From Setoptus koraiensis (Eukaryota; Animalia; Arthropoda), in NCBI GenBank assembly GCA_048013815.1, contig CM106586.1, forward strand, positions 5,394,001-5,458,000: a DNA stretch of 64,000 nucleotides, read 5' to 3'. Below the pieces are notes generated by a model. It searched no databases, was not told the origin of the DNA, and was given only the letters and a program-made list of their open reading frames with translations. Positions 58,259 to 62,139 of the stretch are shown one piece after another (the first letter of the stretch is position 1; every line of letters starts with the position of its first letter). The translations under genes were made by a program, and so were the position numbers.

Positions 58259-59492
58259 ATGGCACCGTCTGTTATACAATGTAAGGCCGTTGTTGCATGG
58301 GCTCCCGGACAGCCGTTATCAGTCGAAACTATTACAGTTGAGCCACCACATCAAGACGAAGTTCGTATCAAGATCGAATATACCAGTGTATGCAAAAGTG
58401 ATCTAACTGTCTGGAAAGGCAATATGCTTAACGGCTTTTTCCCCTGTGTATTAGGACACGAGGGAGCGGGAGTTATAGAGAGCGTGGGAGCGGATGTAAC
58501 AGAGTTGAAACCAGGTGACAAGGTTGTACCATTGTATATATCAGAATGTGGTAATTGTAAATATTGCAAAAATCCAAAGTTGAATATATGTACAAAAACT
58601 GAAATTTTCAGCGGCCGAACTATTGACGATGGTTCGTCAAGAATGAATTGCAAGGGAAAACCTCTCTGCCAATTTTTAGGCGTATCAACATTTAGTGAAT
58701 ATACTGTGGTGCCACAAAGAGCCGTTGCCAAGCTGAACGACGATGCCCCATTAGATCGCGCAGTGTTATTGGGTTGTGGTATCTCGACAGGTTTAGGGGC
58801 TGCGCTGAACACTGCCAATGTACAGAAAGATGAGGATGTTGTTATTTTTGGCCTGGGTACAGTGGGTTTGGCAGTTGCGCTAGGCGCTAAAATGCGTGGA
58901 GCCAGACGTATAATTGGAGTGGATATCGATGATAGTAAATTCGAGCTGGCTAAAGTTTTCGGCGTCAGTGAATTTATCAATCCAAACAAGTGCAAGGATA
59001 AACAGTTGCACGAAGTTGTACACGAGCTCACTGATGGTGGGGTAAAACATGCTTTCGAGTGTATCGGTCATCTCAAAATGATGGAAACGGCGTTCAACTG
59101 CACAGATATTGGTGGGGGTCAAACTATAATCATCGGCGTAGCAGGTAAGTAACCAGGATCGACAACTGATCCTTTGTTGATCAGTCTCTGTTAACACTGA
59201 TCCTCGCACACCTAACATCATCATATTCTTTTCATCGTGTCCAGAATCGATGCAAGATACGTTCAGTGTTAACCCCTTCTGGATCTCGGTCGGACGTGTT
59301 GTAAAAGGCTCGATTTTCGGTGGTTGGAGCGGCAAAAGAGACATACCCAAGCTCATGGACCAATACATGAGGGGTGAGCTATTGATTGATGAGTTCATAA
59401 CTCATCGACGTGAATCTTTAGACGTCATTAGCGATGTTTTTACACTGCTCAAGGATGGAAAATGTCTACGTTGTGTTGTGGCGGTGAAATGA
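58259..59492 (+). CDS. Zinc-dependent medium-chain alcohol dehydrogenase, divergent tandem paralog of ADH3/ADH5, 377 aa. Exons 58259-59144 and 59245-59492
   Basis: Catalytic Zn ligands (VCKSD, GHEGAG, LGCGIST), structural Zn CGNCKYC...C, GLGTVG Rossmann motif. Phase-1 intron 59145-59244 at the same position as in the neighbouring ADH5. Confidence 0.95.
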
Positions 59493-60903
59493 ATAAAAGA
59501 TGACATTGACAAATCACTAAATATAGTCAACATTAGCTGAGCAGGTCTGAACATAGAACAATAAATTAGCAGAAAAAAGGATGAAATCAACTCACAAGAA
59601 AACCCTCTTAGGTGTTTGACTCGTTTTGGGTTCTGCTTGGCCTATCTGTTCTGAACTCTTTGAGCTGAGTGAGAATACGCTATTCCTATACCCTGTTTTT
59701 GCAGTATTTCATGTAAAATCTCTGTACCTCTAGACGGACTGTCCTCAAGATACCGAGATTTATACAGGCACATTGCATTTTATCCTTCCCGAATAGGCAA
59801 TCCAGCATTTGACCAGTTATTATTTTTGTAGTACGTTTTTATTGATGCGAAAATATCTATGCGAGAGCCGTCTAAATAGACCGATTGACAAATGACAAGG
59901 CTCAAAGTTGGGACATGCAGTTCGAGTGCAACTAACAAAAATTAATTTTGGTTGCACAAACCAGTAGGATCAAATGAATGCTCTTAATGGATGCCAACGA
60001 AAATACAACAATAGGTAGATGTTGCCAAGTTGATAATTGATCAAGACAACAAGACATAATCTTTTGTTTGTGACACATAGCCTCTGAATTGCGGCTAATA
60101 ATGATGGCTCACGGTGGGTAACGCTTCTCGAACCATCATGATAGCACACAAATGAATCTGTTATTAGAGAAAAAATTGGCTACAATTCATAGAGTTTTTG
60201 TGACGGTCTTTTTTTGTTACGCTGTTACGTCATCGCCGGGAGAGATTTTCTTCCGGGGAGACAATCCCGAGGTGGGAGTCTTTCTCTGCTGACACCATAA
60301 GTTGTATGAAAGAGAATTGTTAAACACGCTCAGCCAGGCTGCCTGGATAGATAATTCTGCTCAGGCAGAGACGTAATCAGTCGGGCCCATCTAATCTTAC
60401 AATTTCGATCGCAGTATCGCACGTTTATTTTCATTGCCTTTTTACAGCGCGTTTTCGCTGTATTTGTTGTTTGGATCGGATTGGTTGATTCACTTTGTTG
60501 TGTACAGTCGGACGGATATATGGGTACAGTGAAAAGGCAAGCCTCGCAACGCTGAGGTGTGGCGACGAATCGGTACACGCGTCGCGACGGGTAGGAGTCG
60601 CGCAGAATCCTTCAGTTACGCACTACCGTGCACTGTAGAACAGATGCACGGCGTGGAAGTGGTTTCGCGTGTCCTTGAATCACGTCCTTGTCTGGCACTA
60701 CTAGCATACTAGTGATCTGCTGTGCAAGCTTTATATGTTACGTAATTCCACTTTTTCTAGGCATTGTATTATTAGCATCAAATTAGCGAGCATCTCGACA
60801 CATTATTGGTGAATAAATAAAATAAACACAAAAATAACCATTTTAAATACCGATTTTAATCGTAGAAAATTTTCAACAATTAACAATAGATAGAAGTAGA
60901 GAA

Positions 60904-62139
60904 ATGGCACCGTCTGTTATAGAGTGTAAGGCTGCTGTTGCGTGGGCCGCCGGTCAACCATTATCAATAGAAACTGTTCAAGTTCAGCCGCCGAGCAAAA
61001 AAGAGGTTCGCATCAAAATTGAATTTACCAGTGTTTGTCACACCGACCTATACACCTGGAGCGGTGCCGACCCAGAGGGTCTATTCCCTTGTATTCTTGG
61101 ACACGAGGGTGCCGGAACTGTTGAGAGTGTAGGAGAAGGCGTTACAAGCCTCAAGCCAGGCGACAAAGTGGTACCCTTGTATGTGCCACAATGTCGAGAA
61201 TGTGAATATTGTAAACATCCCAAGACGAATCTTTGCCAGGCCATTCGTGTCACTCAAGGACAGGGTGTAATGCCCGACGGAACATCAAGATTCACTTGCA
61301 ATGGCAAGACAATCTATCATTTTATGGGCACCTCAACGTTCAGTGAATACACTGTATTGCCAGAGATATCCGTGGCCAAAGTGGACGAAAACGCTCCCCT
61401 AGATAGGGCTTGTCTATTAGGCTGTGGTCTGTCCACAGGTTTTGGAGCCGCTTTGAACACAGCCGATGTACAAAAGGGCGACACTGTGGCCATATTTGGT
61501 CTTGGCGCTGTTGGACTGGCGGTGGCAGTAGGAGCCAAGATGCGCCAAGCTTCAAGAATCATCGGTGTAGACATAAATGAGAGCAAATTTGAGGTGGCCA
61601 AGAAGTTTGGTGTTACTGAATTCGTCAATCCAAAAAATCATGAGAAACCGATTCAACAGGTATTAGTTGATTTGACCAATGGTGGTTTAGACCACACCTT
61701 TGAATGCATAGGTAACGTTAACACTATGCGAGCTGCACTAGAGGCGGCCCACAAAGGATGGGGACAATCAGTTATCATTGGTGTGGCTGGTAAGTACACA
61801 ATTCTAATCAGATTTAATAACTTATACAAGATTTAATTAGCAACTCCAACCTCATAATAACTCTACTGTTATTTCTTTGTTTTCTCTAATATTGTAGCAT
61901 CTGGAAAAGAGATCAGTACAAGACCATTCCAACTAGTTACTGGTCGCGTTTGGAAAGGCACTGCATTCGGTGGATGGAAAAGTCGAGACAGTGTTCCGAA
62001 ACTCGTGGACCAATACGTAAAAGGCGAGTTGCTGGTGGATGAATTCATCACTCACCGCCGTGAGTCACTCAACGATATCAACGAGGTGTTCAAGCTCTCA
62101 GAGTCTGGACAATGTTTGCGTTGTATAATCAAAATGTAA
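60904..62139 (+). CDS. ADH5: Class III alcohol dehydrogenase / S-(hydroxymethyl)glutathione dehydrogenase / GSNO reductase, 375 aa. Exons 60904-61789 and 61898-62139
   Basis: [55 protein letters not shown] are canonical class III motifs. Intron 61790-61897. Confidence 0.97.

Follow-up and report, generated by a model that had tools for sequence, protein, structure and literature searches.

A tandem duplicate of class III alcohol dehydrogenase that lacks the documented glutathione-adduct contacts in a narrow lineage of mites

The window analysed here is a 64,000-nucleotide stretch of DNA from the mite Setoptus koraiensis (assembly GCA_048013815.1, contig CM106586.1, positions 5,394,001 to 5,458,000). 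It carries two head-to-tail alcohol dehydrogenase (ADH) genes that are of medium-chain dehydrogenase/reductase (MDR) type on the + strand, an upstream gene, U (58259-59492), and a downstream gene, D (60904-62139). Each gene is composed of two exons, amounting to 377 codons in U and 375 codons in D (Table 1), and an AATAAA polyadenylation hexamer overlaps the stop codon of U. The products of the two first exons are 61% identical (E = 2e-138). As described in a first-pass annotation of the sequence, both copies have an 886-nt exon 1 followed by a phase-1 intron after a GVA motif, and the first 18 coding nucleotides of U and D are the same. The motifs listed in that annotation, CKSD, GNMLNG, CTKTE, SVNPFW and KGSIFGG in U and CHTD, GADPEG, CQAIR, TRPFQL and KGTAFGG in D, are all present in the translations. 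About six loci of the ADH_N type are found in the source genome (48.76 Mb, two contigs), and U and D are the only two of them that are members of the actual ADH family. In all searches, trees and counts of nonsynonymous and synonymous substitutions (dN and dS), the two exons were handled separately.

Table 1. Features of the tandem alcohol dehydrogenase locus, in window coordinates
Feature	Position	Strand	Description
U exon 1	58259-59144	+	886 nt, 295 codons + 1 base; ATG at 58259; catalytic and coenzyme domains; from open reading frame and translation
U intron	59145-59244	+	100 nt, GTAAGT...CCAG, phase 1 after GVA; GT at 59145, AG at 59243-59244
U exon 2	59245-59492	+	248 nt including stop codon; from translation
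U-D intergenic spacer	59493-60903		last ~300 bp conserved with L005, a contig of a second species (blastn of L005 versus window)
D exon 1	60904-61789	+	886 nt; canonical class III ADH / S-(hydroxymethyl)glutathione dehydrogenase
D intron	61790-61897	+	108 nt, GTAAGT...TGTAG, phase 1 after GVA
D exon 2	61898-62139	+	242 nt including stop codon; from translation and TIGR02818 match

The downstream gene encodes a canonical class III ADH (ADH3) that evolves very slowly, and it thus keeps the class to which it had first been assigned. Against TIGR02818, an NCBIfam equivalog, D scores 501 bits with exon 1 and 94.5 bits with exon 2, and it carries all six of the residues that contact S-hydroxymethylglutathione (HMGSH) and S-nitrosoglutathione (GSNO). 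The D protein is 97% identical to its ortholog in L005 and 75-79% identical to other animal ADH3s, including those of mites and even fish. Its sequence indicates that D kept the ancestral housekeeping role of ADH3/ADH5, which is that of a glutathione-dependent formaldehyde dehydrogenase and GSNO reductase (GSNOR). The U protein is 55-62% identical to ordinary ADH3s and scores 341 bits with exon 1 and 62 bits with exon 2, the latter on profile positions 295-367. Rough exon-wise sums for TIGR02818 are thus ~403 bits for U and ~596 bits for D, compared with a whole-protein cut-off of 543.95 bits. The best PDB matches of U exon 1 are class-3 ADHs at 339 bits, followed by plant class P at 312-313 bits and vertebrate class I at 284-288 bits, and the PDB matches of U exon 2 are class-3 ADHs. 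In addition, PF08240 matches U exon 1 above its cut-off, and both PF08240 and PF00107 are recorded for the ortholog in L005.

U arose at the DNA level as a tandem copy of the mite class III ADH, within one narrow mite lineage. A maximum likelihood tree was computed from the exon 1 columns of 46 sequences (LG+C20+F+G4). In it, the three U sequences group together (100/99), with the two D sequences as their sister group (100/96), which is the placement beside the neighbouring ADH5-type gene that had been anticipated from the sequence. The five-member group of U and D sequences adjoins seven single-copy ADH3s of other compact animal genomes and then the ADH3 of the velvet mite Dinothrombium. The closest relatives with a name are ADH3s of arachnids and mites. 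In these sister lineages, ADH3 is intronless and has no second ADH in its flanks, as seen on three contigs (L006, L007 and L008-L010). The approximately unbiased (AU) test rejects a tree in which the duplication is older and D joins the sister lineages with U left outside (delta lnL 15.2, p = 0.008). As a sister of D within mite ADH3, U descends from the ADH3 line, and it was not found to belong to the vertebrate ADH1 clade but to arise inside arachnid ADH3, in a tree composed without class I, class II or class P sequences.

The tandem pair is also visualized in a second species, on the Logan contig L005 (SRR33593474), where it lies in DNA that is collinear with the window. Lipase and TRAP-delta genes are found upstream and shared genes downstream, and the introns of both L005 genes match those of the window in position, that of U also in phase. 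A third species (P0002, SRR18067306) contributes a U-type exon 1 with an intact open reading frame (ORF) of 295 residues, in which the same intron is implied by the shared SE* read-through signature. Word-index searches of 5.8 billion proteins, with U as one query and a profile built on all three U sequences as the other, returned only P0001 and P0002 as U-type proteins. With the profile, these two score 612 and 586 bits, after which the scores drop to 487 bits for a D-type protein. Among 152 retrieved relatives, CHTD and Arg115 are absent only from the three U sequences, and no relative was found in metagenome contigs scanned with U exon 1. Synonymous sites are saturated between U and D (pS 0.76), and the duplication is therefore old; as judged from the sequences, it predates the split of the three sampled species.

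Two features of the paired genes deserve separate mention. The intronless ADH3s of the sister lineages (L006-L012) and the ADH3 of Dinothrombium lack the phase-1 intron after GVA, and in the ADH3 of the oribatid mite Oppiella an intron of the same phase lies 9 nt upstream of the U/D site. The U/D intron could be specific to the lineage or could have shifted its position by sliding. The second feature is the 5′ end of the coding region, where the identity of U and D at third codon positions is 0.55-0.65 over the first 40 codons (58259-58378 versus 60904-61023) and 0.40 overall. Recent gene conversion was considered as the source of the 18 identical nucleotides and was rejected because the raised 5′ identity holds in all U/D pairs, with an equal synonymous excess in the cross-species ones. 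The pattern suggests a long-standing synonymous constraint rather than recent conversion.

Comparison of the three U sequences with D shows which parts of the enzyme were retained. The catalytic Zn ligands Cys45, His67 and Cys173 and the adjacent Glu68 are invariant in all four, as are the structural Zn ligands Cys97, Cys100, Cys103 and Cys111; the retention of all Zn ligands that had been noted for the window copy thus extends to the other two U sequences. (Cys45 and Cys173 are in window numbering and correspond to Cys46 and Cys174 of the horse enzyme.) The Rossmann GxGxxG motif (GLGTVG) and Asp223 (in GVDID), the residue of the preference for nicotinamide adenine dinucleotide (NAD), are invariant among the three U sequences, and Arg369 is kept.

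The glutathione site was not retained. In structures of human GSNOR, HMGSH is contacted by Thr46, Asp55, Glu57 and Arg114, and an anion pocket is formed by Gln111, Arg114 and Lys283 (PMC6409631). In U, Thr46 is replaced by Ser, Asp55 by Met, Leu or Gln, Glu57 by Asn, Thr or Ile, Gln111 by Thr, Ala or Arg, Arg114 by Glu, Asp or Asp, and Lys283 by Ile, Asn or Ile (human ADH5 numbering, U sequences in the same order). The four replacements first noticed in the window copy (Ser, Met, Asn and Glu) are therefore part of a change that covers all six documented contacts in all three U sequences. In an alignment with 142 full-length class III sequences, conservation reaches at least 95% in 147 columns. 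Of these near-invariant columns, 24 are changed in all U sequences and three are changed in D. The 24 columns include Thr46, Asp55, Glu57 and Arg114; Gln111 and Lys283 are replaced in every U sequence as well but lie outside this set. Other changes are fixed across the U sequences, namely His47Lys, His139Gln, Met141Leu, Asn225Asp, Arg304Asn, Trp314Val and Ala318Ile/Leu in horse numbering, and Ser48 and an acidic residue at 115 are likewise common to all. The alignments show a U enzyme that lost the documented glutathione-adduct contacts and kept the catalytic residues. On this basis, U would not be class III by the functional definition, the defining contacts being absent, nor class I by descent, and it is best treated as a putative new class within the ADH family that is restricted to this lineage.

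The residues that replaced the glutathione site resemble those of class I ADH in part. States of class I at positions 47, 48, 51, 57, 93, 141 and 318 are compiled in Tables 5 and 6 of PMC4028059, and, in horse numbering, U matches the class I pocket states of Table 5 with Ser48, a hydrophobic residue at 57 (Met, Leu or Gln in the individual U sequences), Leu141 and Ile/Leu318. At positions 93 (Tyr; Phe in P0002), 140 (Phe), 294 and 306, U matches class III. The set of Arg47, His51, Phe93 and Phe140, which is typical of class I and tied to ethanol activity (PMC4028059), is not reproduced in U, which has Lys47, Thr51 (Leu in the other two sequences), Tyr93 and Phe140. The first-pass annotation had proposed a gain of class-I-like residues and had recorded that, in the window copy, the class I His51 is Thr and the class III Tyr93 is kept. 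The latter observation is borne out, and the former holds for positions 48, 57, 141 and 318 and is partial, with no His at 47 or 51 and with Tyr93 in two of the three sequences. Horse class I presumably also has Asp115 and Asn304, which the acidic 115 and Asn304 of U match, and we take CLKND and SMNP to be its motifs at two of the compared sites.

Selection on the two genes was assessed from Nei-Gojobori (NG86) counts for one species pair, the window versus L005, with bootstrap 95% confidence intervals (CI). For U, dN is 0.160 and dS is 0.71, giving a dN/dS ratio (omega) of 0.23 (CI 0.16-0.32). For D, dN is 0.014 and dS is 0.58, giving a ratio of 0.024 (CI 0.011-0.042). The U protein thus changes ~11-fold faster than D, and U is clearly under purifying selection. 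These pairwise counts answer the dN/dS check that had been suggested for the locus, at least as to whether U has been maintained. In addition, the ORFs of U are intact and the introns have GT-AG boundaries in two species (window and L005). Taken together, U is very likely a selected, functional gene.

The distribution of change within the two proteins is opposite. In the pocket and entrance segments (residues 46-60, 109-124, 137-142 and 279-321), D is at its most conserved (omega 0.009 versus 0.029 elsewhere) and U is at its least conserved (omega 0.29 versus 0.20 elsewhere). This variability of the U pocket is compatible with a continuing change in substrate specificity, and equally with a part of the pocket being free to vary. 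An early adaptive burst followed by a slowdown was also considered for U and was rejected, as the rate excess on the recent U branches is as large as that on the stem. The flanking DNA differs between the genes as well. Approximately 300 bp 5′ of D (60600-60903; L005 9732-10013) are conserved between the two species and probably represent the D promoter region, and U and D are probably under very different regulatory constraint.

These observations can be combined into a proposal for the function of U. The enzyme has kept the machinery of a dimeric, Zn- and NAD-dependent ADH, including both Zn sites, Glu68, the GxGxxG motif, Asp223 and Arg369. Arg114, the cationic anchor for the glycine carboxylate of glutathione, is replaced by an acidic residue, both of the acids to which the γ-glutamyl amino group binds are gone, and the middle of the pocket is bulkier and more hydrophobic through Met/Leu57, Leu141 and Ile/Leu318. 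Such an enzyme is predicted to no longer turn over HMGSH or GSNO and to be an oxidoreductase that uses NAD(H) and takes alcohols or aldehydes without charge, probably those of medium chain length or with an aromatic ring, behaving as a “variable” enzyme whose pocket shifts between species. The loss of glutathione-dependent activity is considered likely, and a distinct activity on alcohols or aldehydes is somewhat favored. The reading as a whole, in which U is a lineage-restricted ADH3 duplicate that does not use glutathione adducts and whose substrates are probably hydrophobic alcohols or aldehydes that bear no charge, is considered reasonably probable. A broader proposal describes U as a further, independent instance of ADH3 “enzymogenesis”, that is, a new non-glutathione MDR class with a pocket that converged on several residues of class I, is still diversifying and possibly tracks host-plant chemistry. 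This proposal is tentative and falls a little short of being probable. An independent and convergent origin had been put forward in the first-pass annotation, of which the local duplication, the independence from vertebrates and the loss of the contacts stand, and the class I resemblance is incomplete. A specific link to host-plant compounds is speculation that starts from the animal being a plant-feeding, probably eriophyoid, mite, and it is doubtful at best.

Several observations weigh against U as a new alcohol- or aldehyde-active enzyme. Neither position 47 nor position 51 is occupied by His, and the proton relay of class I is therefore missing, such that turnover may be low; vertebrate class II forms without His at these two positions have low ethanol activity (PMC4028059). 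Two of the three U sequences still have Tyr93. At the old contact positions 57 and 59 and in the 112-123 loop, each U sequence is different, which fits relaxation as well as adaptation. In the tree, the rate excess of U is ~6-fold between the duplication and the divergence of the closest two species and ~12-fold thereafter, and the DNA 5′ of U can be aligned with L005 over only ~10 nt. The tree itself was built from exon 1 columns alone, and the hypothesis rejected by the AU test was framed only after the tree was known.

Several of these points would be explained if U were a redundant duplicate that drifts under relaxed constraint, keeping its fold and a generic activity but gaining no newly selected function, on a slow path to loss. 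This is the main rival explanation, and the fast rate of U together with its most variable pocket also fits partly relaxed constraint. The ~11-fold rate and an omega ten times that of D, the variation of the contact positions and of the 112-123 loop among all U sequences, the lack of conservation in the U promoter region and the absence of a slowdown after the U stem branch are as expected from drift. An omega of 0.23 with an upper confidence limit of 0.32, however, is far below 1 over a dS of 0.7, and the ORF and splice sites of U are intact in two species, with the exon 1 ORF intact in the third. Furthermore, the Zn and NAD residues are all invariant, and one new state is fixed across U at each of Lys47, Ser48, acidic 115, Leu141, Asp225 and Asn304. 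Drift toward loss is thus regarded as unlikely, although it is the rival that survives best.

Alternatively, U could be a second isozyme for glutathione adducts, namely those of formaldehyde and GSNO, that uses a rebuilt binding mode. The class III descent of U, its best PDB and NCBIfam matches to class III and the retention of Tyr93 and Phe140 are in line with such a role. However, six of the six side-chain contacts to HMGSH/GSNO are replaced, and the Glu or Asp now found at the site of Arg114/115 would repel the glycine carboxylate (PMC6409631). The exon-wise TIGR02818 sum of ~403 bits for U, compared with the 544-bit cut-off and ~596 bits for D, points in the same direction. In addition, Engeland et al. 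in 1993 are said to have found that mutation of Arg115 alone cripples formaldehyde dehydrogenase activity, and mutagenesis of Asp57 was reportedly described by Estonius in 1994. A glutathione-dependent isozyme is therefore very unlikely. The same low probability is given to U as a partner subunit, either in a heterodimer with D or as a binding protein that modulates D. ADHs of this family are dimeric and isozymes within a class form heterodimers, and U and D are neighbours that could be co-regulated; yet the catalytic residues of U are all kept under selection, and the upstream regions of the two genes differ in conservation. Horizontal transfer, or membership of U in an ancient, already described non-class-III ADH clade, was considered as the mites are plant-associated and plant class P scores well in the PDB (312 bits), but found no support and is extremely improbable, being excluded as far as the data reach because the tree nests U with D as its sister in mite ADH3 and the AU test agrees, with a common intron and tandem position, class-3 PDB chains that outscore class P and class I, and no close relatives of U found outside the lineage in the protein searches and the metagenome scan, which left the U-type sequences at three.

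With a non-glutathione ADH as the preferred reading of U, its closest analogues are other classes derived from ADH3. Similar to U, vertebrate class I (horse ADH1E and human ADH1B) originated from a tandem ADH3 duplication, lost the glutathione site and is the variable daughter of a constant parent (PMC2792335, PMC4028059). It has Ser48, a hydrophobic residue at 57, Leu141, Ile/Leu318 and a basic residue other than His at 47, all of which are seen in U. Unlike class I, U results from an independent event in mites, has no His51 and has Ser309 and Asp225. The rate of the daughter relative to the parent also differs, with ratios of 3- to 5-fold for the variable classes I and II over the constant class III of vertebrates (PMC2792335) and ~11-fold for U. 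With class III itself (ADH3/ADH5), U shares direct ancestry, fold, length, both Zn sites, NAD dependence, Tyr93 and Phe140; it differs in the six absent contacts, the ~11-fold faster evolution and the lower summed exon score. Plant class P is another independent, ADH3-derived class that is active on ethanol, and its PDB score with U falls between those of class III and class I. It is not related to U by descent, and class P enzymes keep His47 and Thr48 (CHTD).

Two single enzymes are also informative. The liver ADH of cod (1CDO), a “class-hybrid” enzyme that combines a class III-like framework with a function of the class I type, has KGSMFGG where U has KGSIFGG, and the exon 2 region of U aligns well with it. 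It is, however, a vertebrate enzyme of the ADH1 line for which ethanol activity was measured. Rabbit ADH2B, of a class II subgroup, is ADH3-derived as well and, similar to U, has Ser48 and Tyr93 and lacks His at both 47 and 51 (PMC4028059, Table 6), but it belongs to another lineage and has a four-residue insertion after 115. The low ethanol activity of rabbit ADH2B is a warning for U rather than a demonstrated parallel.

The mode of origin of U matches that of vertebrate classes I and II and of plant class P, each of which combines tandem duplication of ADH3, loss of the glutathione site and a faster daughter. Reviews describe ADH3 as the sole ADH class prior to chordates and among invertebrates, with only chordates and plants having others (PMC4028059, PMC5913725), and amphioxus carries one Adh3 gene (PMC3184775). 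In the part of the literature covered, no arthropod paralog that is derived from ADH3 and lacks the glutathione site was found reported, and the genome paper on Aculops lycopersici does not discuss ADH; traits of eriophyoid mite genomes are described elsewhere (PMC7738191). The U/D pair adds a clean example, of moderate interest, to a known evolutionary theme, of which the vertebrate class I/III split, a new enzyme from a constant housekeeping parent, is the classic case. If the proposed function is correct, U would represent an independent and much younger replay of that split, as well as a tractable natural experiment in which parent and daughter are adjacent, orthologous pairs exist in related species and the genome is tiny and intron-poor. 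Such a system would allow one to ask which replacements recur, in what order they occur and whether loss of the glutathione site suffices for a new substrate range. U would also be a candidate enzyme for plant alcohols and aldehydes in a mite with an otherwise reduced set of detoxification genes.

The DNA around the pair contains further features. A segment of ~3.5 kb at 41000-44500 is strongly C-rich and G-poor on the + strand, with a GC skew of -0.44 to -0.66 and a GC content of up to 0.50; within it, no ORF of at least 200 amino acids and no tandem repeat were found. Upstream of U, the window contains an uninterrupted ORF of 1438 codons on the + strand (51771-56087), whose 1435-residue ortholog in L005 has a lipase domain (PF00151). 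The DNA of this region is 84% identical between the window and L005. Downstream of the ADH pair, L005 encodes a 396-residue tRNA-synt_2c (AlaRS) product on the - strand (16731-17921).

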